This document shows, one piece after another, positions 1 to 64,000 of a stretch of 64,000 nucleotides of DNA. A program made the position numbers and the translations under genes. This DNA is from Schmidtea nova (taxonomy: Eukaryota). Each line of letters starts with the position of its first letter. The stretch's first letter is position 1. The notes under the pieces are model-generated. The model did no database searches. It saw nothing but the letters and a program-made list of their open reading frames with translations, and was not told the origin of the DNA. The stretch spans positions 127,534,001 to 127,598,000 of the forward strand of contig CM097884.1 of the NCBI GenBank assembly GCA_044892505.1, given 5' to 3'.

Positions 1-1684
1 TAAATTACTTGAATAATTCCGACTCTGCCGAGAGTTTTCACGTATTAGAATGTCGATAAAGCGGAACAATCTACAAATAAAGATTAAATGTTAATATAAT
101 AGTAAAAATTAAAATTACCGATTCCAATCCATAATGTGAAAAGTCGCCAACAATTACGGTGGGGAAAAAATCAATAAATTTTATTATAGGAAATCAAATT
201 TGTATATCATGAATTAACCAATGAGAACTTACGAAATTTTGCTCGTCGTTTATATAGTGTTCCTTTTCATCGGGGGATCATAGATATTTCTGACGGCGAA
301 GTGACCGGAGTTGGGTTTCTTAAATAAAAATATAATTTGGGATTTAAAAATAACAGTAAAATGCATAATAACCTTGGATAAAATTTAGGAGTAAATAACA
401 AAATAATAGGAGAAATTTTCGTCGTTACTCGTTGCTAGGGCCTCGGTAAATTTTTAAACGACGAAAATATTAAATTTTAATTAAAATTGTAGAGAATTTT
501 TAAATAAATCAAGATAGACATTAAGTAATAACACATAAGCGGAGCTTGATTGAAAATTCACATAAAACTTCGACAATGTAAAAGCTTAAAATTAACAATT
601 AGGTATAATAAAATAACAATAACTGTATATCTCCGAGTTCGAACGTTTTTAAACGAACTTTCAAATCCCGAATTGAGTGGGGATTGCATGAGGAATATAA
701 TAACTAAAATTAAAATTATCTGTATGGCGAAATAAATCCTTTTGTCTAATTGTCAGAGATCTTTGATAATGGAATAAATGTGTTTTGAACGCTATATATT
801 AAATTCTCGAAGAATGAATCAAGACCAGAAATTAGACGACCTGCTGTGTAGAGCTGCTTAAATTTAGAGACACAATCGGCAGGTGGATATCCGTTCAGCC
901 GACCTCTGAAAGTTTAACATAATATATACGTTTCTATTACCAATTGAGTTGCTATTTAAGAGCTTTTAATTCTTTCGACTTCTTAAATGACTTTGCGATT
1001 TCTTTAATAATTAGGTAAAGATGACGTTCTTTGAGCGACGGCGATTTACGAGATGAATGAATATTTTCGATTTTTGTCCAAATTTAATTTAATTTGCTAA
1101 ACTTTTAACTAAAACAATTTTCTTTCATATCTTTATGAATTTTTAAGAAAAAAATCGAAATTTTCATTCTAAAAATATTTTAATTTGTCTTAATTTGTAA
1201 TTTTTTTACATAATTGGTTTTTATGTTATATATGTATTTTTCACTAGTATAGTTGATGCGTTTTTGTTCATTTTAATTTTTAAACGTGTTTGACTGGAAA
1301 CTTTGTAGGCCGGGGTACCATTCCGTATATCACCCATATAATTACCAGAGAGTAATTATAGAAACACGAGTGAGGTAGTTGTATTTTATGAAGATGTCTT
1401 AATTACAGTGAGCCTAACAACCAAAAAAATAAACAATACATAAACCAGCAATGCATAAAAACGACATGAGTGTCAATAAAAAGGAGTTTCAACTTACCTA
1501 GTTGATAAATTAAAATTTTAATTAATTTTTACATTTTCATTTTGGCATTTTGTGTTAAACTTTTTAATTCTGTGGTATAGATTTTTTAAATTTAAAATCG
1601 ATGGTTAAAATAATCACTACGTTAACTAAATAATTTAAAATTTGTTTAAAATCTAAGATTAAATCTAGATAATTTAAATTGGAA

Positions 1685-18438: not shown

Positions 18439-19981
18439 GTGCAATTAAAGCATAAATATGATTCCAATATTAAGAAGTTGAATAATTTAAGGAGATTGTT
18501 CGGTATTTATAAATTTGATGTTAAGGATACTTTTTTAAATCTGAGCAAAGTTGTTTTGATTGATGACGAGGAACCTATTTTAAAATATGATCTCAATCAG
18601 GGTAGTAAAAGTCGAAAAGAAAAAACTAAATTTTGCGCAAAAATTGAATGATTGTACTATGTGAGTACGACTGATTATATTAATAAAAATAAAAAAACAG
18701 GATATAAAGGATTTTTTGATCTTGAAAGATTTGGCTAAAAAGATATAAATGTTTATAAATATGATAAAGGCAATGGGTTGGTGATCTTGGACCACGATGT
18801 GTATGTGAACAAATTGAATGATGTTTTGTTATCTCCACAGTTTGTAAAAGTAGGCATTAGCCGTAAAAATGGGAAGTTACCTCCTCTGAAAGATAAACTA
18901 ACGTTTCAGAATTGTTGAAAAAATTGTCTGATAATAAAAATATTGATGTAGATTTGGTGAGATTCATATATCCGAAAGGATCCCAACCAGCAAACCCTTA
19001 TGGACTTGCAAAAGTGCATAAAGAATGTATGTCTATGAGACCAGTGTTATCGACTGTAAGAACTGCTCAATACAAAATAGCCAAAATTTTGGATGGGTTA
19101 TTAAAATCTTTAATAATTAAGTTTGAATGTAGGGATAGCTTTGAGTTTGTTTGGTTTGTTGCTCAGTTGAACAAAAACACTGAGAATGAAATTATGGTTT
19201 CTTTTGATGTTTGTAGTCTTTTCACTAATGTTCCATTGGCGGAAACTATTGATTTATGTTGCAACATATGGAATGAAAATGAGTTTGAACATGCAAATAT
19301 GTATAAAATAGCTTTTTTTAGGTTACTCGAATTTGCATTGTCGAATGTTAATTTTCTGTTTAAGAATAAATGGTACAGACAATGGTATGGTGTCGCTATG
19401 GGTTATCCATTAGCTCCAACAATGGCTTCTATCTATATGTCTAGTTTGGAAATGAAAATCTCTTTCTACAATCTTATTAAACCAGCTGTGTACAAACGTT
19501 ATAAGGATGATATTTCTTTGGTCTTTGAAAGTCGTAAACATGTAAAGCCTTTTTTGAAGTACATGAATGGTTTGTATACGAACATTAAATTCATTTGTGA
19601 GGAAGAAAAAATGCCATCGATTGCGTTTTTAGATTTACTCATTCAACGCAAGACGAAACATTATAAGACTAAATATATAGAAAATCGACTGATACTGGTC
19701 TGTATACTACGTCTGAGAATGTTTGTGAATTTAAATATAAGACGAATATGGTGAGAGGATTGGTGTTTAGTGCTTGGTCACTATCTTCTACGTTTGTTAA
19801 TTCAGTAAAAAGTATCGAGGATATGGTTGAGTTGTTACTTAAAAATGGCTATTCTAAATCTTTTCTTGAGAAAATGACAAAAGTGACTGTCGGTAAGTTA
19901 ATGTTGAATGCTAAAGATCTTTGTATGGGTGTCTCTGAATCTAAGGTGCCTCTATTGATTCTGATGAAAGTACTTTGTTAA
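18439..19981 (+). pseudogene. Penelope-like element reverse transcriptase, frameshifted; GIY-YIG domain not seen
   Basis: Motifs DKGNGLVILD, YGLAKVHKE..MRPVLS, SFDVCSLFTNVP, YGVAMGYPLAPTMA, YKRYKDD, IAFLDL, NGYSKSF in consecutive frames. Confidence 0.9.
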
Positions 19982-20008: not shown

Positions 20009-20047
20009 TGCCTGAAGATGACTGCTATTTAGTCGAAATTAATCGCA
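20009..20047 (+). ncRNA. Minimal type I hammerhead ribozyme at the 3' end of the Penelope-like element
   Basis: UGC-CUGAAGA-U-GACU(gcuauuu)AGUC-GAA-AUUAAU-C|GCA: intact core, palindromic stem III, AUC cleavage triplet. Confidence 0.8.
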
Positions 20048-20139: not shown

Positions 20140-20520
20140 TTTAAACAATAAAAATATTTTTAATTTAAATAAATTAATCTTAAAAATATAATATTCTCTT
20201 TTTATAAAATAATATTTTTTTAAAGAATATTTTATAAATATTTTTATATTTATAAACAACAGAATGATTGAAAACAAAATCCATAATCCCCAATTGAAAA
20301 TGCTCTAATACTCGAGTACAGAAAAGACGGTGGCATTTCGCCAATGACATTTGAAAAATTAAACGAGTATAGAACACAAATCAAAAGAAAAAAAATAAAC
20401 ATCATCAACAATCACATCAGTTAATTTACTTAAACCGCAAAAAATGAGGCAAACACACACACTCAAAACTCTCACACTCACATATTCACAAACATCGATA
20501 TGACTGAAAACAACGCTAAA
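20140..20520 (-). mobile_element. Inverted partial copy of the hammerhead-ORF monomer
   Basis: Matches ~60650-61030 in the same orientation; directly abuts the plus-strand copy starting ~20525. Confidence 0.85.
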
Positions 20521-20524
20521 TCCC

Positions 20525-23500
20525 TAATATTATATTTTTAAGATAAATTAATTTAAATTAAAAACTTTTTTATCGTTTTAAATTCTTTGGCTATTTTATA
20601 GAATTTATAATATGCATTTTATTTTAAAAATTATTATTAACCCTCAAAAGCACAACAGAGCCTGTTAGTCTCTAATTGAATTCAATTTACTGATAACTTT
20701 ATTGATATTTATTAAATTTTTCTAAAATGTCTTGTATTCGTCTATTTTCAATATTTAAGTATAAAAAATCAAAGCAGGCCAAAAAATTTTGCTTGATAAT
20801 GTAATATAATTAAATTTCATAAAAAAATCGCACAAACGCACAACAGTGCTTATGGAGCTCTGCATATTGACAGTGTGAATCACTATATAGATAATTGCAC
20901 ACCAACGCTATCGCTTGAATCATAGAAGACTGAGCAGTCAATCGGCGCATCAATTGGCGCATTTGCAAGTAAAAATATTCAAAAGGTTTTTTGAATAAAG
21001 TTGATAGTGTATAAGTTGTATAAGTTTGTTTGAATAGCCGATTGGAATTTCGGTATCCTGTTTTATTGATAAAATTGGTAAGTTAGTTTTTATTTTCTAA
21101 GTTTACATTTTTATATACAATTAGAAAACATTTAGAAAAGTAAAAATATGGCCAACGTCCCATTGAGTAAAATGCAACTAGAAGAGATTTTAGAGAATTG
21201 GACCGACGATGAAATTGACTTACTTGAAGATGAAGCTAATCAAGCATCAGATTCTGAAATTAAACTTGTGATGGAGATGTCAAATGAAGAAGATGAAATA
21301 TCGTAAGATGAAAACGAACAGTTTGATATACCTGTAAATAACCAAAAATATAACGGTAAAGATGGAACTGAGTGGATGGCCAACCCATATGGGAGTTCCC
21401 GCTCAAAATCGTGCAATATCATAAAAGGGAAACTTGATACAGTTTTTTGTATGTTTATTGATGAGACAGTCTGTGAATTGATTTTAAAATATACGAACAA
21501 AGAAGCAGTAACAATGTATGGTCAATCAAGAAAGTGGAAACCAATAGGCAGTAATTTTTTTGTCAACAATGCACTATGACGACAAGATGACCGAAAAAAA
21601 AGATAAAGTTATGTCGGAAATAAATAAATATTATGACTTAACCAAAGGAGGTGTTGATACTTTTGATCAACTTATTCACGAATATATGATAAAGAGAAAA
21701 ACTAATCGTTGGCCATTAGCTTTTTTTTATGAATATACTAGATGCCGCTGGAATAGCTGCATATGTTCTGTGGATTAAAAAATTTCCGTATTGGAACCAA
21801 AGGAAACCCAACATACGAAATTTATTCCTGCGAGAATTGGGCGAATCTCTAGTTGAACCTTACATAAGAAAGAGGAAAAATAACAAAAACTTGCACTAAT
21901 CGTCTCAAAGTGCAATAAAAACCTATCTTGGAGCTTTGCCTACTGAAAGTTCTTCTAGCAGACCTTCAACTTCCACTTCAGATGAAAGCATCCGAAAAAG
22001 GAAACGGTGTCATTTGTGTCCATACGCAAAATCCAAAATGCTGACACATTTTAAATGCGATAATTGCCAAAAAAATGTGTGTAATGAACATTCAATAAAA
22101 GCAATAAGTTGTTCGTCATGCCAAAATAATTAGTTATTATTTTGTTAAATTATATATTTAATTATGTTTATATATATTTTTTGAATTATGTTTTTTATTT
22201 TTTTTATATGTATATTTTTTTGAATTATTTTTTTTATTTTTATGTAAATAAAGTAATTTTTGTTCTTTAATAAATTATTTGAGTCTAATTATTATCAAAA
22301 TACAAAGAAATATGTAATAGAGACTCAGAGGCACTGTTGTTTCTAACGCTTGTAAAATAGTTGTGTTTTTTAGGGTTAATTGGTTTGGAAAATCATTTTA
22401 TTTGATTTATATTTGAATGGAAGATTAAGTAGCACCTGATAAAGAGAATTAAGTTCTCGAAATATATTGTAAAGAATATATATTTGGATTGGCGTTTGTT
22501 TTTAATTGTTTTAGTGCTGTGTTTGTTTGTTATGTATTAAAGAAAAATAATTATCCTTCAGTTGTTCCGGTATTCTTTGAAAGTCTGTGTAGGAAAAAAA
22601 TTTTATTTTAAGTGATTGAAGATGTTCGATTCATTGATCAAAGAATTTGGATTGACATTCTAGAATTGAAGATTGAAAGGCGTAATCACCTAGTCTTTGT
22701 ATTGCCTCTGATTGGATTACTAATGTGTAGAATGAAAGATAATTTTTTTCATTCTAAATGTATAGAGTTTTATATTGCCAAATTAGTATTTTGATTTAAT
22801 GATGAGTTTTACAATCGTGCTGATTATTTCTCTTATTCTATTATTTATGAATTAATTGGTGTGATTGTTGGCGATTCTAAGTTTTCTGTATTGCTCTTTG
22901 TTCTGTTCTCGTTTATTTTTTCAAACGTCATGGGTGAAATACCACATACATTGGAAAAGACTGCCCGTCTTCTCTGTATTCGAGTTTCAGAGCGGAGTCA
23001 ATTAATGGGATTTAGCGTTGTTTCCAATCATATCAATGTTTGTGAATATGTGAGTGTGAGAGTTTTGAGTGTGTGTGTTTGCCTCATTTTTTTGCGGTTT
23101 AAGTAAATTAACTGATGTGATTGTTGATGATGTTTATTTTTTTCTTTTGATTTGTGTTCTATACTCGTTTAATATTTCAAATGTCATGGGCAAAACGCTA
23201 CATACTTTGGAGAAGACTGACAGTCTTTTCTGTACTCGAGTATTAGAGCATTTTCAATTGTGGATTATGGATTTTGTTTTCAATCATTCTGTTGTTTATA
23301 AATATAAAAATATTTATAAAATATTCTTTAAAAAATATTTTTTTTATAAAAAAAGAGAATATTATATTTTTAAGATTAATTAATTAAAATTAAAATTTTT
23401 TTTATCGTTTTAAATTCTTTGGCTATTTTATAGAATTTATAATATGCATTTTACTTTTAAAATATTTATTACTTTGTTTGGAAAATCATTTTGTTTGATT

Positions 23501-23600
23501 TATATTTGGATGTAAGATTGAGTAACACCTGATGAAGAGAATTAAGTTCTCGAAATATATTGGGCAGAATATATATTTGTATTGGCGTTTGTTTTTAATT
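20525..23600 (+). mobile_element. Older, decayed copy of the hammerhead-ORF tandem element (monomer ~1093 bp), interrupted by piggyBac
   Basis: Hammerhead-like cores at 22436 (CUGAUAA, mutated) and 23529 (CUGAUGA); ORFs 22861-23106 and 23069-23383 are frameshifted homologs of 61593-62429. Confidence 0.85.
20641..22375 (+). mobile_element. Internally deleted piggyBac transposon with transposase remnants (21148-22133)
   Basis: TTAA TSDs, TIRs CCCTCAAAAGCACAAC / CCCTAAAAAACACAAC, YDLTKGGVDTFDQ..KRKTNRWPLAFFY motif and Cys-rich C-terminus CHLC..CDNCQKNVCNEH. Confidence 0.92.
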
Positions 23601-23681
23601 TTAATTAAAGTAAAAATTAAACTAACAACGGAATAACACATATATCATATGCAATAGTTTATGAAATTAATAGTTTACTAC

Positions 23682-24440
23682 TCACAAAAAAGAGACATTT
23701 CTTGCTTTGTTCAAAGCAAATTGTGAAATTAAGTCATGTATATCTAAATTATCTAGGATTTCATGTTCAATTGAAATTATTGATATATTACTTAGACGTT
23801 CCTGGAGAATAGTTGATCTTAAATAATTTTTAATTATCTTTAATTTTGGAAACGATCTTTCACCTGTTCCAACTGAGGTTGGTAATGTTAATAAAATTCT
23901 GGTCACAATAAATATATTTGAGAATATTGCCTGAAGATAATTTTGTAAAAATATATAATAATATAGATTGAGGTCTAATATCTTCTTCTTTTAAAAATGC
24001 CTTTATAGTTTTTATCTCTTCGAATAACTCAATTCCATTAATATCGGACTCATTTCTTTGTTCGTCAGTTAATTTCAAATGCAAATCTTTGCAGCTTTGC
24101 AAAAGTATTTCTTCCGTTTCATCTTTAATATTATACATAAATCCAAATATATCATTATTCAATTTTAGCGCTTCGAAATTTGTTGTAATTGATGCAAATG
24201 CTTGGTCTATAATGCAGAAATAAAAGTTAATTGTAAAATTTGCTTTTGGATCTAATATTGGTTCATCCTTGCATTCATAATCAAAATTTGTTGGTTTTTT
24301 TCTTATTCTTAAACTGGTAACTTCTAGAAATTCAGGTTCTTTGTGTAATTTTTGGGCTAATTCACTAGCTGATGTAAGTATTTTTTCAAATTTATTATCA
24401 TTACGACAATTTTTAAAAAACTTTTGCAAATGCACGCGTT
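23682..24440 (-). pseudogene. hAT transposase C-terminal part, including the dimerisation domain, frameshifted
   Basis: LLTLPTSVGTGERSFPKLKIIKNYLRSTILQERLSNISIISIEHE. Confidence 0.9.
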
Positions 24441-24503
24441 GCACGCCCTCTTGGAGCGCCCTGATTGTCATGTTTTTTTGATGAATTATAATAATAATTA
24501 TTA

Positions 24504-25569: not shown

Positions 25570-27467
25570 ACATCTTGTCTTTGTTAACTTGGCTTGCAAC
25601 TGCAATGTCTTTGTTAACTTGCATCTGTTTTGCAATGTCTTTGTTAATATTGCACATGAATTGCAGCGTCAAAATGGGTAGGAAAATAAATATATATTAC
25701 GTTGTGGTAGTTTAATTATTTTATTTTGACATCTTGAAGGTTTGAAAATATACACACACACATCTCAAATATCTTTTGCATGATATTTATATAGTTTTAA
25801 AAAATTTTGAACCCTTGAATATTTTTGAATATTTTTGAATATTTTTTATTAACTTGCATGTATGTCTTTGTTAACTTGTATCCACATTGCAATGTCTTTG
25901 TTAACTTGCATATGTATTGCAATGTCTTTGTTAACTTGCATATGTATTGCAATGTCTTTGTTAACTTGCATATGTATTGTTTTGGCATTNNNNNNNNNNN
26001 NNNNNNNNNNNNNNNNNNNNNNNNNNNNNNNNNNNNNNNNNNNNNNNNNNNNNNNNNNNNNNNNNNNNNNNNNNNNNNNNNNNNNNNNNNNNNNNNNNNN
26101 NNNNNNNNNNNNNNNNNNNNNNNNNNNNNNNNNNNNNNNNNNNNNNNNNNNNNNNNNNNNNNNNNNNNNNNNNNNNNNNNNNNNNNNNNNNNNNNNNNNN
26201 NNNNNNNNNNNNNNNNNNNNNNNNNNNNNNNNNNNNNNNNNNNNNNNNNNNGCATTACAATGTCTTTGTTAACTTGCATATGTATTGCAATGTCTTTGTT
26301 TAGTTATTTTGGCATTGAAATGTCTTTGTTAAGGTGTTTTTGGTAATGAAATGTCTTTGTTTAGATGTTTTGGCAATGATATGTCTTTGTTATGAATAAA
26401 TTCTATGTTTAAGAGTACATATATAATCTTTGAATTGTAATAAAAGTTCGAGTAATAAGCTTTGGCAGATAAAAACCATCACAAAAGATGTTCTGATTGT
26501 AAATGTTCTGCTAGTAAATGTTCGTGTCTCTGTTTAGTTATTTTGGCATTGATATGTCTTTGTTTAGGTGTTTTTGCAATGAAATATCTTTGTTTAATTA
26601 TTTTGGCATTGAAATGTCTTTGTTATGAAATTTGGCATTGAAATGTCTTTGTTATCAAATTTGGTAATGAAATGTCTTTGTTATGAAATTTGGCATTGAA
26701 ATGTCTTTGATAAGGAATTTGGCAATGAAATGTCTTTGTTTAGTTTTTTGGTATTGAAATGTCTTTGTTATGAAATTTGGCAATGAAATGTCTTTGTTTA
26801 GTTTTTTTGGCAATGAAATGTCTTTGTTTAGTTTTTGGCATTGAAATGTCTTTGTTTAGTTTTTGGCATTGAAATGTCTTTGTTTTGAAATTTGGCAATG
26901 AAATGCCTTTGTTTAGTTTTTTGGCAATGAATTGTCATTGTTTAGTTTTTGGCATTGAAATGTCTTTGTTATGAAATTTGGCAATGAAATGTCTTTGTTT
27001 AGTTTTTTGGCAATGAAATGTCTTTGTTTAGTTTTTTGGCAATGAATTGTCTTTGTTATGAAATTTGGCAATGAATTGTCTTTGTTATGAAATTTGGCAA
27101 TGAAATGTCTTTGTTTAGTTTTTTGGCATTGAAATGTCTTTGTTATGAAATTTGGCAATGAAATGTCTTTGTTTAGTTTTTTGGCATTGAAATGTCTTTG
27201 TTAATATTGCACATGGTTTTGCAATGTTTCTTGATGACTCATATTTGTGTTAAAAAATTTGTGTTAAAAAAATTTGTGTTAAAAAAATTTGTGTTAAAAA
27301 AATTTGTGTTAAAAAAAAATTTGAACACATACACATATGAATATGACCATCATACTCAACTTTCAATTACCTTTTGTTTGATACATATATTACATAGTTT
27401 TTAAAATTTTGAACCTTGGACCCTTCGAGGGTTGACCATCATACTCAACTCTCAATTACCTTTTGTT

Positions 27468-28140: not shown

Positions 28141-30281
28141 AATGATACCCTTGTTTGAAGGTTTGACCTTATTTAACCTTTAAAAATTCAAATTTAAAAT
28201 TTGAATTTGAAATGAGTCATCGATGACGTCATAAAATTCAAATTTGAAATGAGTCATCGATGAGTCATAAAAATTTTTCTACCCCCTCCCCCGGGAGGAG
28301 GGGGTCTTTGTTCTTTTTCCCGCCCACGCAATGAGTCATAATGTCTTTGTTCCCGGCTCCACACATCTACCTACTTCAGAAAATAGGGATCGCAGTAGAT
28401 TTTCTTTTGCCAATAATCTACGGAAATTTTCATTTAGATATACTTTGAAGCGATCTTTATGTGGATTATCGTCAGAGACACGCGAAAACATTAACACAAT
28501 TGTCTTATTTAAGTCACGAAGATAATGAGGATATTCTTTTGAATTGAAATAATTCCCATGGCATCTACGAATGAAACTTGCGGTGGGTTTTTTCATATTG
28601 TCATAATCCGTCATTTGATAAATAATTTCCCATTGAACCATAACAGATCCCATTGAACCATAACACATCCTTGCAATCAATTGTTTCCATCTTTTTCCAA
28701 TTCAAATTCAAAATTTTTAAAATTCCCGAAAAAAACCAATTTTCCAAATTACTCGATTAATTAAACAAAAACGTTCTAGAAAAAAATCCAAAGCATTAAA
28801 GCAAAGTTCGAAAAAATCCAAATCCAAATTTACCCAATTGGATTAATAAAACAAAACTAGATTTTAGAATAATCCATTAATTCTAAATCTCAAATAAAAC
28901 CGGCAACAAAAACGCGCACACAGACGCGTATCATAAATAGCAAAAAAATAAGCGCACACAGACGCTGATAATTAAAAAAAGCAATGCGCACACAGACGCT
29001 GACATCCAGAAATCACCAGCTTGGTTTGAAATTCAAAATGTTGTGTATCTTGTTGTGCACACGTGTTTTGTTATTAATATGTAAATTTTAACTATTTAAA
29101 ATAAATTTTTTTGAGTTTTCATTGTTATAATCTGTAAATAAAATTGAAATTCCTCCAAAATGGCTAAATTCAAAATTTCAAAAATCTTACAAAAATAACG
29201 CGCGACATGTAATATCTTACTACTTTCCAGACTCATAGTAATCGCTTAATTAACTACTTTCATCTAAATTCTGAAATTATCTATACCTTCTGGCTATCAT
29301 CAAAATATAATTAATTATTTATTCTGCTCTTTAACTACCAATAATCATGTTGTCTTGATATGGATACATTGTGACTTTTCTAATTGTTTACCCAACTTGA
29401 TTTTTTTTGTTTTTCTTAACTAATTAATTAACTAATTTAAAATTTCATATTTTACTCACATTTTTCGGTTTTTGAACCTTTTTGAACGTTTTATGATAAA
29501 TCATTTTACATGTTGTAACTCCTCTATCACTTGTCCATTTCTAGATTTTAAATTGCCTGATTAATAATTTGGGTTTTTCCCAGTCTATGTTGTCATAATA
29601 TTTCCCTTTGCAATCTGTTTATTCTTGATTATGATTATACATCTCTATTTAGCTTCTTTTCAATTTTACAAAATAATTTTAGTCTTTACAACCTCAACAA
29701 TATTATATATTGAAACCTTTCTATGACGTAAAGTTCCATTTTTTGTATAAACGAAAATACTCGACGATTCTGATGAGTTAAATTTTTTCAATAAAAATAG
29801 ATACAATAAAATTATTTTTTAATAAAATTATTTTCTATTTATCATTATTTTATTATGAATCACATTTTTAAGGGGAAAGTTCTAAATTCTTGATTTAGAC
29901 TAAAATCATTTTTAATTGCAAATATTTTTTTTTAATATTAAAGGAAAGTAAAAAAATGATTTAACAAACATTTGTTAAACTAAAACTATTGAATCAATTA
30001 TAATAAAATTTATTTTTCTCATTTCAAATAAAAAAGTAATAAAACAACATGAGTATGTAGTTGTATTCTAAAATGATATCATAAAATTAATATTCTTATC
30101 ATTATTATTTTAATGATATCAAAAATCNNNNNNNNNNNNNNNNNNNNNNNNNNNNNNNNNNNNNNNNNNNNNNNNNNNNNNNNNNNNNNNNNNNNNNNNN
30201 NNNNNNNNNNNNNNNNNNNNNNNNNNNNNNNNNNNNNNNNNNNNNNNNNNNNNNNNNNNNNNNNNNNNNNNNNNNNNNNNN

Positions 30282-30660
30282 GCAAATAAGATTTTATTAA
30301 TAGAAATTGATCTCCAATTGACAAGTTGGTCTTTGGCAACCGGAAATCCTGACCTATGATAACAAGAGTTGAAATGAGCAAGCTCCATGACAGTCCGTAT
30401 TGATTGATTTCTGGTGATGGCGAATAATCGTTTAATCGAGATTGATTGTGATCCAATGTATTGATTTGTAGATTTTTTGAGTTATACATTTCAGATTTGT
30501 CTGGATAGTATATTAATATTGATTCAGTTAATGACAAGCATCTTCCAGTTTGTACGGCTTCTTTACGCATTCCAGCAACGAAACATTTCTGCAATCTACG
30601 GAACTGGCAATTGTTTCTTCTTTGAATATCGACTACGCAATCTCCACTAGAGTAGAACTG
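30282..30660 (-). pseudogene. Nuclear receptor fragment (second zinc finger plus start of LBD, NR2-like), degenerate
   Basis: DCVVDIQRRNNCQFRRLQKCFVAGMRKEAVQTGR with two expected Cys lost; downstream LSIGDQFLLIKS resembles the LBD signature. Confidence 0.75.
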
Positions 30661-30665
30661 ATAAT

Positions 30666-32559
30666 TGTTGTCATTTGATGAAAACGAGTCGCTGTGAATG
30701 TCTTGAGTGAATTGGCATATCAAATCATTGTTAACAGCTTGCATTTTTTTTGATCAGCGTGAAAAAGTGAAAATTATGTAAATATTAAAACAACATCCAA
30801 TTTAATCCATTTAATAATTAATTAATTTAAAAGATTGAAAATTTAATCTAAGGCACTACAATAGCCCCCGCCGAAGTACGCGGAGCGTCTCTAAGCTAGA
30901 AAATGGATTTGGGTGTTGGGTGAGTCACTGAAGGTGATAATCGGAGAGATATTGAGGGAGTTTACGTGTTCGCCTAGAAGAGAATGGCGGGTTGTCTTGA
31001 GAAAGTTGGGTATTTGTCGTTTCTGTAAGGGTCTTCAGTTGTTCCGTGTCTTCTTGAATGTCTTCATCTATAGGATCTTCTTTCATGATATGGTAATTTG
31101 GTCGTTCATCATACTCAAGTGTGCAAAAGGATGGTTTTAATCTTGATAGGTTGACCATAATGTGATTGTTATCAATTTCTAGTTTCGCTGTGTTTTTGTA
31201 TAGTTCGATGATGCGGAATGGGCCTTTGTATCTAGGTTTGAGGTTTGATGAATCAATTGTCTTTATCCATGCGTGGGTGGCAGATGAAAGTGATTGTGGT
31301 ATATACGGTTTGTATGATGTAGAATATGTGAAAGATGGATTTGTATCAAGACTCAAAAAATGATTGCGAGTGAGGTTGATTTCCTCTAGTGACGATTCGT
31401 TCTGTAGATCTATGAGTTCGTTGGGCATGGATGTGTTGGAACCGAACAAAAGTTGTGAAGGTGACACGCCACTTGAGCGGTTGGGAGTGTTGTGCCACCC
31501 GAGCAAGACGAATGGTAATGCTTTGGTCCACGAAGTTGTCGTTGAGAGTATTCTGAGGGATGCTTTCAAAGTCCGGTGGGCGCGTTCCACAAGACCGTTT
31601 GTTTGTGGGTGATATGAGCTGGTACGTAAATGACTGATGCCGAGGCTGGTGGTCAGATGATCGAAAAGGTCTGATTCAAATTGTGTTCCTTGGTCTGTGA
31701 TTATGGCGGTTGGGATTCCATAACGCGAAAACCAAGTGGATATTAAGGCGTGTGCAACCGTTTTTGCGGTGATGTCAGAAACTGGAATAGCCTCGAACCA
31801 GCGTGTTTTCCTATCGATCATTGTCAGTATATAGCAGAATCCGTCGTCTGCGGGGAGTTTGCCTACTAAGTCGATGTGGAGTATGTCGAATCTTGAACCA
31901 GTCGGGAATGGTGTGATTGGTGGTTTAGTATGTTTGTTCACTTTGTGTTGTTGGCAGCCTTTACATTCAGAGACCCACTGTTTAACGTCTTTAAATAATG
32001 AGAACCAAGTGACCTTTTGTCGTATGAGATGGTATGTGGACTTAATTCCTGGATGGTGTAGATTATGAATCGCGAAGAATGCTTCTTTCCTGAGTAACGA
32101 GTGCAAAATTGGTCTAAGAGTGTTTTTATACGTTGTGTCATAATGTATACCGTCTATTATCTCAAGCGAGTCTTTGAAGCGGGCGAGGTCAGCTGTCGTT
32201 GGTGGAGTCGAACGGAGAATTTGTTGGGTGAAAACTGGTGTAGAGGTAATTGATGCAGCAATGTTTCTAGAAAGATAATCGGCGACCACATTATCTTTGC
32301 CCGAAACGTGAACAAATTTAATGTCAAAAGTTGATAGGTATGTTATCTGACGATGTACTCTGTTCGATGGGTCTTTCATGGTAAGGCAGTGGATGAATGT
32401 CTTGAGTGAATTGGCATATCAAATCATTGTTAACAGCTTGCATTTTTTTTGATAAGCGTGAAAAAGTGAAAATTATGTAAATATTAAAACAACATCCAAT
32501 TTAATCCATTTAATAATTAATTAATTTAAAAGATTGAAAATTTAATCTAAGGCACTACA
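30666..32559 (-). mobile_element. Deleted Ty3/Gypsy element with short LTRs (3' LTR 30666-30860; 5' LTR ~32394-32559, truncated)
   Basis: ~165-bp direct repeat starting TGTAGTG on minus; purine-rich GGCGGGGGC before the 3' LTR; flanks ATAAT/ATCAT may be a TSD. Confidence 0.7.
30925..32379 (-). CDS. Gypsy pol C-terminus: end of RNase H and complete integrase
   Basis: HVSGKDNVVADYLSR; HHCC (HNLHHPG..CKGC); DLVG, TDQGTQFES, YHPQTNGLVERAH; LKPRYKGPFRI (GPY/F); NLSRLKP. Confidence 0.95.
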   Translation of the reverse strand: MKDPSNRVHRQITYLSTFDIKFVHVSGKDNVVADYLSRNIAASITSTPVFTQQILRSTPPTTADLARFKDSLEIIDGIHYDTTYKNTLRPILHSLLRKEAFFAIHNLHHPGIKSTYHLIRQKVTWFSLFKDVKQWVSECKGCQQHKVNKHTKPPITPFPTGSRFDILHIDLVGKLPADDGFCYILTMIDRKTRWFEAIPVSDITAKTVAHALISTWFSRYGIPTAIITDQGTQFESDLFDHLTTSLGISHLRTSSYHPQTNGLVERAHRTLKASLRILSTTTSWTKALPFVLLGWHNTPNRSSGVSPSQLLFGSNTSMPNELIDLQNESSLEEINLTRNHFLSLDTNPSFTYSTSYKPYIPQSLSSATHAWIKTIDSSNLKPRYKGPFRIIELYKNTAKLEIDNNHIMVNLSRLKPSFCTLEYDERPNYHIMKEDPIDEDIQEDTEQLKTLTETTNTQLSQDNPPFSSRRTRKLPQYLSDYHLQ

Positions 32560-33357: not shown

Positions 33358-33405
33358 TTATTATTATATTTTAATAAACTCTGCTAAACGACAAACCAAT
33401 TTTGT

Positions 33406-33442
<37 letters not shown>

Positions 33443-33506
33443 CTATTTATCCAATATACACTTATCCGATATACATTTACTCTATATACATTTATAGAAT
33501 AGAAAC

Positions 33507-35679
33507 CCCCTGCTAATCCCAAAGGATCAAAGATTCTAGCTAAACAACTAAGAAATCCTCGTTTCGAGAGACATTGTTGACTTGGTGGCTTGACATCGTA
33601 ACCAAACTTATCCTCTGCCGCCACCCAAACTAGTCCCAGGGTTTTTACTGCCACCTTGTTCTCCTCGTTCAAACTTAATAACTTTGATATCCTCTCTAAA
33701 GGGATAGTTTCTAATACCTTTTTGTCATTAGTGAGCCATTTGTTCGTAACCATTCCTGCCTTCTCCCAAATACCAATAATCTCATCCTTGATCCTAACCG
33801 CCTCCTCGACCGATTGAAAAGAGTCCATCGTGTCATCCATGTACGTGGATTCTATTATTGTTTCTGCCGCCCTCGGAAACCTTTCTCGAAATCTCTCCGC
33901 ATTTCGTCTGGTGACTAGCTGTGCTAGAAACGGAGATATGTTTAGTCCGAAGACTAGCCGTTCGAATTCAAAACCCTCAGTTTTTCCATCTTCCTTCCAA
34001 ATGAATCTTAAGTATTTTCTATCCTCTGGATTTACCTTTATCTGGAGGTACATTTCTTGTATATCACAAGCAATCGCCACTGAATGTTTTCTGAATCGTA
34101 ATAGTATCTCAAACAAATCATTTTGTAGCTTTGGTCCTTGCTCAATAGTATCATTTAAATTAATACCGTTACTTTTCGCTGCTGCATCAAAGACTATTCT
34201 CATCTTGGTTGTCTCCTTGTCCATTTTTATCACCGGAAAATGTGGCAACCACCATCTTGTCTCACGAAATTCGCTCTCTGCCAACACCCTAATATACTTT
34301 TTTCGCACGTAGTCATTGATTACCTCTTTGTAGCTTTCTTTTAACCTACTGTCTTTCGCCAACCGATTGCCTAGACTCCTCAGACGCGTCTCCGCCATTT
34401 TCATATTCTCTTGAAGTTGATACTTGTTCTCCCTCCATAACAAGCTAACCGTGAACCTTCCATCCTCGCACGACATACCTTCGATCGCCTTTTGCATTAA
34501 TATTCCTTCACTCTGACTGAACTGATTCTTTTCAATGTGAGTTTCCTCAATTTCCCAAAATTGCCGCATCTGGTTCTCCAATCTCTCTGTTTTAGAAAAA
34601 TAGCTCTGGACAAAATGAGAGTGTTGCGGAGCTTGATCTCCATTGATCTTGCCCAGACATGTCCATCCGAGAGGCGTCAGTCTGGCAACCGGCTCATCCA
34701 TCATCCTTCCTACTTCTCGAATAGATCTGTGCAAATGGGGATAGTCGGCCCCAACTAAAACATCTATCTGCGGTCTTTTCCCAAGAACCGGGAATCGAAT
34801 ATCCTTTAGGTGCTCCCAGTTATACGCCAGCTTTTGCCAATTGCATGCTCTTAAGTCCCCCGTGACGCTTTTGACGACCAGAGCCTTAAAGTTGACTTTC
34901 ACCTTGTTATTATTGCTTGCCAACATCACCTCTATCGGCCTCGTTTCCAACATTTCCGATTTCCCCCCAATCACGCCAACTGGAATATTTTCCCATTGTC
35001 CCCCAACGCCTAATTTCTGAGCAACCCAATCACTAATGTAACTCACATTACTTGCATCGTCAAGTAATGCATTTACTCGGAATTCCTTCCCTTTATTAAT
35101 TAATTTGATCGGAATCGTTCTCAATGGCACATACATGTTCTGACTTTGTTCTGCGTGACAGGTCACCATTGACGTATTTTTATTCTCATCTTTCTTTTGA
35201 CCGTCATTTATTTTGACCCCTGGGCTATGCAGTAAGAAATGATGTTTTAACTTACAGTTTTCATTTTTACATTGACTGGGTTTCCCACAGTTCCTAACCA
35301 TGTGACCTGCCGACAGACAATTAAAACATAACCCGTTATTTTTCACAAACTCATGACGCTCTTTCGCATCATACCTTAAAAAGTCTGGGCATCGGTTTAA
35401 ATAATGTTCTCCTCTGCATTTCTTACATTTTAGTGTCGTTTTTCGTTCTCCACCAGCTTCTACCTTCGGATTGTTATCCACGAAATTTGTAACCCTCTTC
35501 TTATTTTCAATCTCCTTTCTATTTCCTGGCTTTCGCTCTCCAAACAATATATTCAAAGCTTTGCGATGCCTGTCAGCTTCTCTTTTTACCCATTCTGCCA
35601 AGGTTTGTACATTTGCCTCCTTCCCTGACTCACAATTGCGTGCCCACTGTATCAGCATGGTTTCCGGTAACTTTTTCAA
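33507..35679 (-). pseudogene. BEL/Pao gag C-terminus, protease and RT, 3'-truncated at the start of RNase H
   Basis: Three Cys motifs (CKKCRGEH..C, CFNCLSAGH..C, C..C..HHFLLH), ALLDDASNVSYI, WWLPHFPV, RIVFDAAAK, DIQEMYLQI, YMDD, RIFDPLG; codons after ~33507 run into unrelated repeat. Confidence 0.93.
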
Positions 35680-60659: not shown

Positions 60660-61466
60660 TTAAAAATATAATATTCTTTTATTTTTATACAAAAAAAATA
60701 TTTTTTTTAAGAATATATTATAAATATTTTCATATTTATAAACAACAGAATGATTGTAAACGAAATCCATAATCCCCAATTGAAAATGCTCTAAAACTCG
60801 AGTACAGAAAAGACGGTCAGTCTTGTCCAAAGTATGTGGCATTACACCCATGACATTTGAAAAATTAAACGAGTATAGAACACAAATCAAAAGAAGAAAA
60901 TAAACATCATCAACAACCACATCAGTTAATTTACTTAAACCGCAAAAAATGAGGCAAACACACGGACTCAAAACTCTCATACTCACATATTCACAAACAA
61001 CGATATGACTGAAAACAACGCTAAATCCCATTAATTGACTCCGCTCTGAAACTCGAATACAGAGAAGACGGGCAGTCTTTTCCAATGTATGTGGCATTTC
61101 ACCCATGACGTTTGAAAATATAAACGAGAACAGAGCAAAGAGCAATACAGAAAACTTAGAATCGCCAACAATCACATCAATTAATTCATAAACAATAGAA
61201 TAAGAGAAGGAATCAGCACAAGTGTAAACCTCATCATTAAATCGAAATACTAATTTGACAATATAAAACTCTATACATTTAGAATTATAAAAATTAAATA
61301 CAAACATTTTCCTAGACAAACTTTCACAGAATACCGGAACAACTGACGGATTATTATCTTTCTTTAATACATAACACAACCAGCATGGCACTAATATAAT
61401 TAACAACAAATGACAATCCAAATATATATTTTGCACAATATATTTCGAGAACTTAATTCTCTTCAT
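60660..61466 (-). CDS. Second copy of the monomer ORF (268 aa; extra base in an A-run shifts the C-terminus)
   Basis: Identical to 61593-62429 up to KKIFF. Confidence 0.55.
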   Translation of the reverse strand: MKRIKFSKYIVQNIYLDCHLLLIILVPCWLCYVLKKDNNPSVVPVFCESLSRKMFVFNFYNSKCIEFYIVKLVFRFNDEVYTCADSFSYSIVYELIDVIVGDSKFSVLLFALFSFIFSNVMGEMPHTLEKTARLLCIRVSERSQLMGFSVVFSHIVVCEYVSMRVLSPCVCLIFCGLSKLTDVVVDDVYFLLLICVLYSFNFSNVMGVMPHTLDKTDRLFCTRVLEHFQLGIMDFVYNHSVVYKYENIYNIFLKKIFFLYKNKRILYF

Positions 61467-61592
61467 CAGGTGCTACCCAATCTTACATCGAAATATAAAT
61501 CACTTAAATCGATTTATTCGAACAAATTAGTATTAATTTTTAAAATAAAATATATATTTTAAATTCTATTATAGTCAAAAAATTTATATCGT

Positions 61593-62429
61593 TTAAAAAT
61601 TTAAAAATTTAAATAAATCAATCTTAAAAATATAATATTCTTTTATTTTTATACAAAAAAATATTTTTTTTAAGAATATATTATAAATATTTTCATATTT
61701 ATAAACAACAGAATGATTGTAAACGAAATCCATAATCCCCAATTGAAAATGCTCTAAAACTCGAGTACAGAAAAGACGGTCAGTCTTGTCCAAAGTATGT
61801 GGCATTACACCCATGACATTTGAAAAATTAAACGAGTATAGAACACAAATCAAAAGAAGAAAATAAACATCATCAACAACCACATCAGTTAATTTACTTA
61901 AACCGCAAAAAATGAGGCAAACACACGGACTCAAAACTCTCATACTCACATATTCACAAACAACGATATGACTGAAAACAACGCTAAATCCCATTAATTG
62001 ACTCCGCTCTGAAACTCGAATACAGAGAAGACGGGCAGTCTTTTCCAATGTATGTGGCATTTCACCCATGACGTTTGAAAATATAAACGAGAACAGAGCA
62101 AAGAGCAATACAGAAAACTTAGAATCGCCAACAATCACATCAATTAATTCATAAACAATAGAATAAGAGAAGGAATCAGCACAAGTGTAAACCTCATCAT
62201 TAAATCGAAATACTAATTTGACAATATAAAACTCTATACATTTAGAATTATAAAAATTAAATACAAACATTTTCCTAGACAAACTTTCACAGAATACCGG
62301 AACAACTGACGGATTATTATCTTTCTTTAATACATAACACAACCAGCATGGCACTAATATAATTAACAACAAATGACAATCCAAATATATATTTTGCACA
62401 ATATATTTCGAGAACTTAATTCTCTTCAT
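61593..62429 (-). CDS. 278-aa hydrophobic protein of unknown function encoded by the monomer
   Basis: 837-nt ORF covering ~87% of the monomer; internal duplication SNVMG(E/V)MPHTL(E/D)KT; several hydrophobic segments. Confidence 0.6.
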   Translation of the reverse strand: MKRIKFSKYIVQNIYLDCHLLLIILVPCWLCYVLKKDNNPSVVPVFCESLSRKMFVFNFYNSKCIEFYIVKLVFRFNDEVYTCADSFSYSIVYELIDVIVGDSKFSVLLFALFSFIFSNVMGEMPHTLEKTARLLCIRVSERSQLMGFSVVFSHIVVCEYVSMRVLSPCVCLIFCGLSKLTDVVVDDVYFLLLICVLYSFNFSNVMGVMPHTLDKTDRLFCTRVLEHFQLGIMDFVYNHSVVYKYENIYNIFLKKIFFCIKIKEYYIFKIDLFKFLNF

Positions 62430-62436
62430 CAGGTGC
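62396..62436 (-). ncRNA. Minimal type I hammerhead ribozyme; identical copies at 61433-61473 and 60469-60509
   Basis: GCAC-CUGAUGA-A-GAGAA(uuaag)UUCUC-GAA-AUAUAU-U|GUGC; 4-bp stem I, 5-bp stem II, palindromic stem III, AUU triplet. Confidence 0.78.
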
Positions 62437-63122
62437 TACCCAATCTTACATCGAAATATAAATCACTTAAATCGATTTATTCGAACAAATTAGTATTAAT
62501 TTTTAAAATAAAATATATATTTTAAATTCTATTATAGTCAAAAAATTTATATCGTTTAAAAATTTAAAAATTTAAATAAATCAATCTTAAAAATATAATA
62601 TTCTTTTATTTTTATACAAAAAAATATTTTTTTTAAGAATATATTATAAATATTTTCATATTTATAAACAACAGAATGATTGTAAACGAAATCCATAATC
62701 TCCAATTGAATTTTACTGTTGAGGCCTCCGGCGATCCGCTTAGATTTATTAATATTTTGTAAATTATTCATATTTAGATAATTAATTTAAATATAATTGA
62801 TGAAAAATTTTGTGAGTAAAAAGTGACGAAATATTTCAAGTATATACTATATAAAGGTGAATTTTATTAACCGACCAATCAGAATCGAGATAGGATAGGC
62901 AAATACATGCACACATACTGCACACATAATATACCTTTGTTTATGTGTGTTTGACGTCACGATATTGCTTTGTATCGTGACAAAGACATGACATGTGCTT
63001 ATCATGCATTGATCACGCACTGGTCATGCCTTTGTGATGAAAATAATAATATTTATAATTAATAATAATATTTATAATTAATAATAATAAAAATAAAAAT
63101 TAATAAAAATAATAAAATACAT

Positions 63123-63524
63123 TTATTGCTTTAAATAATCGACAACAGCAGACAAGCACCCTTTATAGGCACACATACAATGATCTTTATAGGGACATGA
63201 AATGTTTTCAGGAACATATTCAACTTCTTTAAAATTATATTTAATTAATCTTAATTTGGGGAAATACTTCTTCAAAACATACATATTTTCATTATCGGTA
63301 ACATAGAAAATAGCTCCTTTATCTGTGATATCATCCATTATACATTTTGGGCAAAAATAATCTTGTCCTTCAAACGATTCTATACGATCAGGCCATAAAG
63401 ATAAATCACTGTATATATAATACTGAGGTGTGAAAATATTATTGACATTCATAATACATAATTCCTTAATTGTTGTTCCACCCATTTCATTATATCCATA
63501 AAAATCGATAAAATAACAAGACAT
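63123..63524 (-). CDS. 133-aa Polinton-associated protein; N-terminal IDFYG..IKEL and C-terminal Cys/His cluster
   Basis: Intact ORF adjacent to and co-oriented with the adenain-like protease; function not recognised with certainty. Confidence 0.6.
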   Translation of the reverse strand: MSCYFIDFYGYNEMGGTTIKELCIMNVNNIFTPQYYIYSDLSLWPDRIESFEGQDYFCPKCIMDDITDKGAIFYVTDNENMYVLKKYFPKLRLIKYNFKEVEYVPENISCPYKDHCMCAYKGCLSAVVDYLKQ

Positions 63525-63556: not shown

Positions 63557-63935
63557 TTATAACATTGATTTCAACCATGCAAGGCAATGTTCACCACAAG
63601 TGATTGTTAAAGGATGCTGATACCGAATTCTATTATACACAATAGGTTTACCGATAGTTTGTAGTTTTCGAACAAGTAAATTCGGATAATAATATCCAAA
63701 GGGATCAAATACATGTATTCGATCTGGTTTCACATAAACTGCAATCCAATGTTCACCGCCCAATGTAGATGTCTGAGTATTTACAATGATGGCTTGATTC
63801 ATTTTCAAATAAGGTATTTCATCTAGTGGAAATACTCCAATAAATTGATTTCCCAATAGTTTTTTACCTTGTTGTAATACCTGAAAAGAACTATTTAAAA
63901 ATAAATTAACTAATCAATTAAAAATCTTACTCCAT
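63557..63935 (-). CDS. Adenain-like Polinton/Maverick cysteine protease with a predicted 40-nt intron (63930-63891)
   Basis: FIGVFPLD, VNT..GGEHW, FDPFG, YQ..TCGEHC (His/Asp/Gln/Cys); splicing gives MDSFQVLQQGKKLLGNQF. Confidence 0.85.
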
Positions 63936-64000
63936 AATAAGAATAATAAAAATAATAACTTTGATCATTTATACTGTTTGATCTCTGCTAAAACTAGTAA

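Follow-up and report, generated by a model that had tools for sequence, protein, structure and literature searches.

Among the closest described counterparts of the repeat element reported here are the minimal type-I hammerhead ribozymes of Penelope-like elements (PLEs), reportedly also the subject of a 2017 study by Lunse, Weinberg and Breaker. The element lies in a stretch of 64,000 nucleotides from Schmidtea nova (assembly GCA_044892505.1, contig CM097884.1, positions 127,534,001 to 127,598,000 of the forward strand), hereafter called the window, in whose own numbering all positions are given. It is built of units of about 963 bp with a hammerhead motif at their junctions, and carries one long open reading frame (ORF) whose start codon lies within the hammerhead core. 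Minimal type-I hammerheads of PLEs, in which flatworms are rich, occupy the junctions of tandem and partial-tandem insertions (Cervera & de la Pena 2014, PMC4209133). Such hammerheads are recognized by an additional base separating positions 9 and 10.1, by the pair G10.1-C11.1, by the combination of a long helix II with a short helix I, and by a palindromic helix III (PMC4209133). PLE insertions typically comprise partial tandems, inverted copies and tails of 30-40 bp (PMC8557442), and internal initiation has been described for them (PMC11167929). In the Poseidon PLE of Anolis carolinensis (PAc), the ORF starts at stem II and the cut falls 26 bp downstream; the PAc ribozyme needs protein assistance, and ends of RNA-seq reads were not found at the cut (Frangieh et al. 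2024, PMC11167929).

Two further groups of hammerhead-bearing RNAs invite comparison. Known metazoan retrozymes of the non-LTR type (without long terminal repeats, LTRs) have units of 170-400 nt, no described ORFs and, for the most part, canonical hammerheads whose loops contact each other (Cervera & de la Pena 2020, PMC7229834). Zeta viruses and betaviroid-like circular RNAs pass through no DNA stage, bear ribozymes in both polarities and possess ORFs which are stop-free or longer than the genome; polymorphisms in zeta viruses cause non-conservative amino acid changes and create no stops (bioRxiv 10.64898/2026.09.16.752053).

Our analysis directly shows four features at this locus: a hammerhead core with its helices, the signature of tandem insertion, a structured sense RNA in which substitutions spare base pairs, and an open ORF. 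Taken together, they lead us to favour, with modest confidence, the view that the repeat is a non-autonomous retrozyme-like retroelement of about 963 bp, with a PLE-type hammerhead at each junction, which would be copied in trans by a reverse transcriptase (RT) of PLE type.

Hammerhead copy 1 (62396-62436, minus strand) contains the 7-nt core CUGAUGA at 62432-62426, and the ATG at 62429-62427 corresponds to A6-U7-G8 of this core. On the 3´ side of the core follow one unpaired A, the 15-nt stem-loop II (6 bp and a triloop), the sequence GAAA, whose last A is A15.1, the palindromic loop UAUA of helix III, U16.1 and finally U17 at 62400. Helix I has 4 bp and is formed by GUGC (62399-62396) paired with GCAC (62436-62433). 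Copy 2 (61433-61473) and copy 3 (60469-60509), both on the minus strand, are identical to copy 1 in sequence; past the cut of copy 3, only a 32-nt tail remains. The conserved positions of the class (C3-U4-G5-A6-N7-G8-A9, G12-A13-A14, A15.1-U16.1 and H17, which is not G) are complete in all three copies. So are all four PLE-specific traits of PMC4209133, namely the bulged A, the G10.1-C11.1 pair, helices II and I of 6 and 4 bp, and the palindromic helix III closed by the UAUA loop, and the placement at unit junctions agrees as well. The repeat differs from the PLEs described there in that its unit is only 963 bp long and contains no ORF for an RT-endonuclease.

The ORF of unit 1 (61593-62429, minus strand, 278 codons and a stop) starts at the ATG of the core. 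It begins with MKRIKFSKYI, and these ten codons span helices II and III of hammerhead copy 1. Codon 10 occupies 62402-62400 and ends with U17, so the predicted cut falls exactly between codons 10 and 11, as a preliminary description of this DNA had proposed. After cleavage, the upstream fragment would retain the AUG with its ten codons at its 3´ end, and the remaining 268 codons would belong to the downstream one. Because the cut splits the frame in this way, the ORF is complete only on a multimer left uncut or on a circle formed by religation. That translation would be coupled to RNA topology, as suggested in that description, is a geometrically valid inference, and we regard it as possible.

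An in-frame UAG lies three codons upstream of the core AUG (62438-62436), which makes this AUG the first possible start of the ORF. Its context, C at -3 and A at +4, is fixed by the ribozyme core, and under scanning such a context is weak. The AUG by itself is trivial, since any hammerhead with U at position 7 contains it; the non-trivial feature is the long ORF behind it. The frame of this AUG is also the only one of the ribozyme frames without a stop. Two small signals recur in each unit upstream of the core: a one-codon upstream ORF (AUG-UAA, 62451-62446, minus strand), 22 nt 5´ of the core AUG and in another frame, and an AAUAAA hexamer (62481-62476, minus strand), about 44 nt 5´ of the core. 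Either could be due to chance, the surrounding sequence being 81% A+T.

The arrangement is not unprecedented: a start codon within the hammerhead and upstream of the cut has been published for PAc (PMC11167929), and the layout is thus not new in kind. The likeness extends to tandem loci and to insertions ending in a tail inside the ORF of the next unit. The start codon of PAc comes after C3 and G8, whereas here the AUG is A6-U7-G8 itself and lies in the same frame, one codon nearer the 5´ end. The ORF of PAc encodes an RT-endonuclease and the ORF studied here is an orphan, the two systems being compared by published description and not by sequence.

Searches of the window corroborated the assignment of the ribozyme. 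A pattern of the 27-nt core occurs five times in the window, with none expected from shuffled sequences: three times on the minus strand in a young array of units (at 963/964-nt spacing) and twice on the plus strand in an older one. The full structural descriptor recovered four sites, three of them in the young array and one at 20012, and not a single site in 200 window-length sequences generated by a first-order Markov model. Helices I and II are both contained in the minimum free energy (MFE) fold of the local 63 nt.

The site at 20012 belongs to a second hammerhead family (20009-20047, plus strand). It has the same geometry, with a 1-nt bulge, a 15-nt stem-loop II and a 4-nt palindromic loop III, and a different sequence: the bulged base is U, helix II is closed by a G-C pair, the loop is UUAA, position 7 is A and position 17 is C. 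In helices I and II, four pairs are changed on both sides between the two families, a compensatory pattern in the two families compared. Directly upstream of this hammerhead lies an RT remnant of a Penelope-like element (18912-19754, plus strand, Pfam RVT_1), and its relatives P0031 and P0043 have an RT followed by GIY-YIG, i.e. PLE architecture. Both hammerhead families share a 13-nt motif situated 26-29 nt past GAAA, and the arrays end at this motif or just beyond it.

Next, we turn to the genomic arrangement of the repeat, obtained by comparing one unit with the window by blastn. In the young array (60441-62710, minus strand), two full units lie between a 5´-truncated one (unit positions 686-963) and a 3´ tail of 65 nt (positions 1-65), which terminates in a (TTA)n-like AT-rich tract. 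The full units are 963 nt (unit 1) and 964 nt (unit 2) long and 99.9% identical, with the hammerheads marking their junctions. The older array is 88-90% identical to the young unit. Its right part (22376-23603, plus strand) contains the end of one unit, a full unit with a broken copy of the ORF, two hammerhead cores and a 75-nt tail (positions 1-75). In its left part (20149-20640), an inverted 5´-truncated piece (unit positions 441-839, minus strand) abuts another 5´-truncated piece (794-906, plus strand). The two parts are split by a piggyBac-like insertion (20641-22375, plus strand) with CCC...GGG ends and TTAA duplications at 20637-20640 and 22376-22379. The transposase ORF of this insertion is fragmented. 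ORFs resembling the C-terminal part of a hAT-type transposase, as judged by eye, abut the 3´ end of the older array (23682-24471, minus strand).

Truncation at the 5´ end is thus variable among copies (positions 686, 794 and 441), one truncated copy is inverted, and the arrays end 32 and 42 nt past the predicted cut. Partial tandems with pseudo-LTRs, an inverted 5´-truncated copy and a short tail together make up the insertion signature of PLEs as defined in PMC8557442. Since genomic inserts run through the cut site, the template of reverse transcription must have been continuous across it, and was therefore either an uncut multimer or a religated circle.

The sense RNA is strongly structured. 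The monomer from cut to cut (61437-62399, minus strand) folds with -249.5 kcal/mol, compared with -190.5 +/- 8.5 for shuffled sequences (z = -7.0). The antisense monomer reaches just -134 kcal/mol (z = -2.7) and the sense fold uses 62 G-U pairs, so the fold is strand-specific. A hairpin spanning the unit junction joins the ends of the monomer. Inside the ORF lie two rod-like hairpin domains. The MFE of D1 (61911-62198, minus strand, 288 nt) is -96.9 kcal/mol, whereas 200 shuffled sequences give -62.8 +/- 4.4 (z = -7.7). D2 (61606-61904, minus strand, 299 nt; z = -8.7) is homologous to D1, with an offset of 255 nt and 76% identity.

Both comparisons available clearly show that substitutions spare RNA pairing. 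Between D1 and D2, 16 of the changed pairs are kept and 11 broken, the permutation means being 11.7 and 21.8; between young and old copies, 29 are kept and 28 broken, against means of 22.5 and 43.4. In neither comparison did any of 2000 permutations break as few pairs. Divergence is also lower in the region of ORF and rods (66 of 800 sites) than in the AT-rich spacer (27 of 158).

The ORF takes up 87% of the 963-nt unit and is open to a degree that base composition or RNA structure does not account for. Over its span the ORF frame is free of stops, and the remaining sense frames contain 21 and 30. The longest open run was 155 codons in 20000 composition shuffles and 152 codons in 5000 shuffles preserving the predicted base pairs, compared with the 278 codons observed. 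The internal duplication of the rods is in frame, its offset of 255 nt being exactly 85 codons. The 3-nt periodicity is modest (p = 0.0045) and comparable to that of the PLE RT remnant, which has similar length. In unit 2, the ORF (60660-61466, minus strand) encodes 268 amino acids, a single frameshift relative to unit 1 altering the C-terminus; the same frameshift gives this unit its length of 964 nt. Between the ORF stop of unit 1 and the next hammerhead lies a spacer of 123 nt (61470-61592, minus strand; 81% A+T), and this spacer holds nine stops in the ORF frame. Given these stops and the 964 nt of the neighbouring unit, we find no meaning in the divisibility of 963 by three, which had been pointed out before.

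Conservation of the start codon and frame among copies, named in the preliminary description as a check, differs between the window copies. The young ones retain the AUG. The older full unit has lost it, and its upstream core does carry one mismatch, in line with that description. The frame of this unit is broken by about five frameshifting indels and three stops, in addition to three in-frame indels (two of at least 30 nt). The older inverted piece has four frameshifts in its copy of the ORF, whereas the young copy is intact.

No homologue of the ORF was found in Pfam, among 5.8 billion clustered proteins, among 1.84 billion representatives or among PDB sequences. The sole match, P0001, was rejected as the translation of a tandem repeat, matched 13 times over about 27 residues. 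AlphaFold2, run on the single ORF sequence, yielded no confident fold (pLDDT, predicted local distance difference test, 39). Nor was any signal of codon-level selection detected in the comparisons of the young copy with either old one, of the internal repeats, or of unpaired sites. Differences are spread evenly, without bias towards any codon position; at positions 1/2/3 they number 17/17/9 between the young and the older full unit, 7/6/8 between the young unit and the older inverted piece, 12/19/12 between the internal repeats and 9/8/10 at unpaired sites only. Of the changes separating the young from the older full unit, five are synonymous and 38 non-synonymous. The stop-free divergence of D1 and D2 reached no significance in a simulation of neutral divergence (P = 0.19). 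Far beyond chance, the frame is kept open, yet the residues it encodes show no visible constraint. We hold translation into a functional protein to be less likely than not.

Several observations weigh against the reading of the repeat as a PLE-dependent element with an active hammerhead. The Rfam hammerhead models gave no match on the 64 kb, on 2.5 kb or on 141 nt, either at the gathering score or at E<=10; minimal variants of PLE hammerheads were also missed by earlier descriptors (PMC4209133). Helix I has just 4 bp and helix III consists of A-U pairs only, helix I is not retained in two copies of the older array, and in longer folds a competing 7-bp A-U hairpin buries the cut site. A fold of 91 nt is about as stable as its shuffles (z = -0.29), and minimal PLE hammerheads cleave poorly in vitro (PMC4209133). 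The unit contains neither RT nor endonuclease, its ORF and the adjacent PLE remnant are not similar, and in four related PLE loci reached via RT homologues the descriptor matched no hammerhead. Collections of viral, metagenome and prokaryote-genome sequences gave no exact-pattern match to the 27-nt core or to a degenerate 35-nt conserved block of the ORF. Finally, the evidence comes from three loci, all of them in one 64-kb window.

The small palindromic helix III of this class implies action as a dimer, and the competing hairpin would fit the low, dimer-dependent activity reported for minimal PLE hammerheads. A cut placed after a helix III of 7 bp, considered as an alternative, is rejected because helix I could not form. 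One might still suppose that there is no ribozyme at all and that an ordinary AT-rich tandem repeat contains a hammerhead-like string by chance; the silence of Rfam and the unremarkable 91-nt fold would suit this view. It is disfavoured, and in our opinion very improbable, in the face of the full descriptor with no hit in 200 null sequences, the match with every published PLE-specific trait (PMC4209133), and the second family, which adjoins a PLE RT and has the same geometry with compensatory pairs. The motif is thus very probably a genuine minimal type-I hammerhead of PLE type, with self-cleavage predicted from its sequence.

As for the dependence on PLEs, an autonomous member of the group has a single ORF with a telomerase-like RT and usually GIY-YIG, which the unit lacks. 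Outside the module of hammerhead and tail, the unit nowhere resembles the PLE remnant. In the absence of RT and endonuclease, and with an ORF unlike that of the remnant, the link to PLEs rests on architecture, hammerhead class and the short shared motif. We read the unit as at most a non-autonomous PLE relative, which would depend on PLEs for its propagation.

The comparison with retrozymes is similarly mixed. As in the metazoan representatives, there are tandem repeats with a type-I hammerhead, an AT-rich sense RNA pairing with itself (z = -7), co-occurrence with PLEs and presumed mobilisation in trans. The size of 963 nt, the single ORF covering 87% of the unit and the PLE minimal type of the hammerhead deviate from them. 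Beside the known metazoan retrozymes, of 170-400 nt and described without ORFs, the unit is a new variant. With zeta viruses as well as betaviroid-like RNAs it has in common compactness, extensive pairing, an ORF running through the hammerhead, start or stop codons that may overlap the ribozyme, and a full ORF requiring a circle or multimer. Unlike them, it resides in genomic DNA and has a ribozyme on just one strand, a search of the unit's other strand having revealed no hammerhead; its ORF ends in a normal stop, after which come nine more stops in frame. Because of these spacer stops and the 964-nt length of the second unit, the analogy to zeta viruses fails on the defining points of a stop-free ORF and a length divisible by three.

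What remains to be weighed is the role of the ORF. It could be argued that the element is a coding retrozyme, whose unit is excised by the hammerheads and ligated to a circle of about 963 nt; only this circle or an uncut multimer would restore the AUG to the ORF, and protein output would report RNA topology. Such a proposal has to cope with an ORF lacking homologues in the collections of 5.8 and 1.84 billion proteins and in PDB, a pLDDT of 39, no codon-level purifying selection even at unpaired sites, and a core AUG whose context (C at -3, A at +4) is weak by general knowledge of scanning. It draws strength from the geometry of AUG and cut, which holds, from ORF openness beyond composition or structure and the modest 3-nt periodicity, and from the junction hairpin holding the monomer ends together. 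The RNA is moreover highly paired like retrozyme circles (PMC7229834), coding circular RNAs with hammerheads overlapping start or stop codons are known (bioRxiv 10.64898/2026.09.16.752053), and the genomic copies prove that the RNA was once continuous across the cut site. An uncut linear transcript, however, provides the same geometry without any circle, as is assumed for PAc (PMC11167929). We consider a coding retrozyme unlikely. There is little likelihood that the locus represents the first protein-coding retrozyme, that is, a DNA-encoded, PLE-mobilised and hammerhead-processed rod RNA of about 1 kb with an orphan ORF complete only on the religated circle or uncut multimer.

The opposite proposal is that of a non-coding structured RNA composed of rods, hammerhead and tail motif and acting, as known retrozymes do, solely at the RNA level, in which the frame is open transiently or for a reason other than its product, and the AUG is simply that of any CUGAUGA core. 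The frame itself is the obstacle here: it contains no stop, compared with 51 for the remaining sense frames taken together, none of the 20000 composition or 5000 structure-preserving shuffles comes near 278 codons, the internal duplication of 255 nt preserved the frame, and the ORF, interrupted many times in the old copies, is unbroken in the young one. In keeping with a non-coding RNA, visible selection acts on pairing and not on codons, the orphan ORF has no confident fold, a frameshift in the last part of the ORF already separates the two units of the young array, and known metazoan retrozymes are described without ORFs (PMC7229834). The stop-free divergence of D1 and D2 is not significant when taken alone (P = 0.19). 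We regard this proposal as rather doubtful, though deserving serious attention.

According to the favoured reading of a non-autonomous retroelement copied in trans, the junction layout would be inherited from PLEs, with an ORF beginning inside the hammerhead and a cut a few codons further on. The start would have shifted by one codon and become joined to an orphan frame of 278 codons in place of an RT-endonuclease. Transcripts spanning several units would be the working RNA. The ribozyme, weak and active only as a dimer, would cleave a fraction of these multi-unit transcripts. As the cut parts the AUG from the body of the ORF, cutting and translation would be alternative fates of one molecule. 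The template of reverse transcription would have crossed the cut site, as an uncut multimer or a religated circle, and its copying may have been initiated near the short motif 26-29 nt past GAAA.

Three constraints overlap at this locus, imposed by the ribozyme core, by a rod-like RNA fold under strong selection and by the maintenance of a long open frame. Should the frame be translated, any one molecule could be either cleaved or translated but not both, and retrozyme-like elements would not be uniformly non-coding. If it is not, the repeat would be an unusually large structured-RNA parasite dependent on PLEs, and an example of a real-looking ORF without a gene. A coding retrozyme, should it prove true, would connect genomic retrozymes with coding viroid-like RNAs (zeta-, delta- and obelisk-like), and cleavage by the ribozyme would act as a switch determining whether the RNA can be translated.

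The window as a whole has about 27% G+C and holds pieces of PLE, LTR-element, piggyBac-like and hAT-like origin as well as an ORF for an adenain-like protease. This cysteine protease ORF (63557-63856, minus strand; Peptidase_C5, E = 3.9e-6) lies just upstream of the young array and is adjoined by an ORF of 133 amino acids (63123-63524, minus strand); the two may be a Polinton/Maverick-like remnant, the window ending at 64000. An ORF of 944 amino acids (35676-38510, minus strand) combines fragments of Cpn60/TCP-1, HECT, HSP70 (mortalin-like) and ubiquitin in a mosaic, and is situated directly upstream of an RT ORF (33364-35679) and an integrase ORF (30925-32379) on the same strand. Together they look like a large LTR-type retroelement with captured pieces of host genes. 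The captured mortalin fragment is 78% identical to that of Dugesia japonica, other flatworms coming next with 67-70%, as would be likely for a host among planarian-like flatworms.

Long ORFs at 45258-46346, 30079-30744 and 25797-26346 overlap runs of N (45276-45535, 45555-46324, 30128-30281 and 25990-26251) and are therefore partly masking artefacts; the N runs are far from the repeat element. AT skew is strongly negative around a further ORF of 952 amino acids (49616-52474, minus strand), which encodes a retrotransposon gag domain along with two CCHC zinc knuckles. A 56-bp tandem repeat extends over 53584-55391, with 32 copies of 98% identity.
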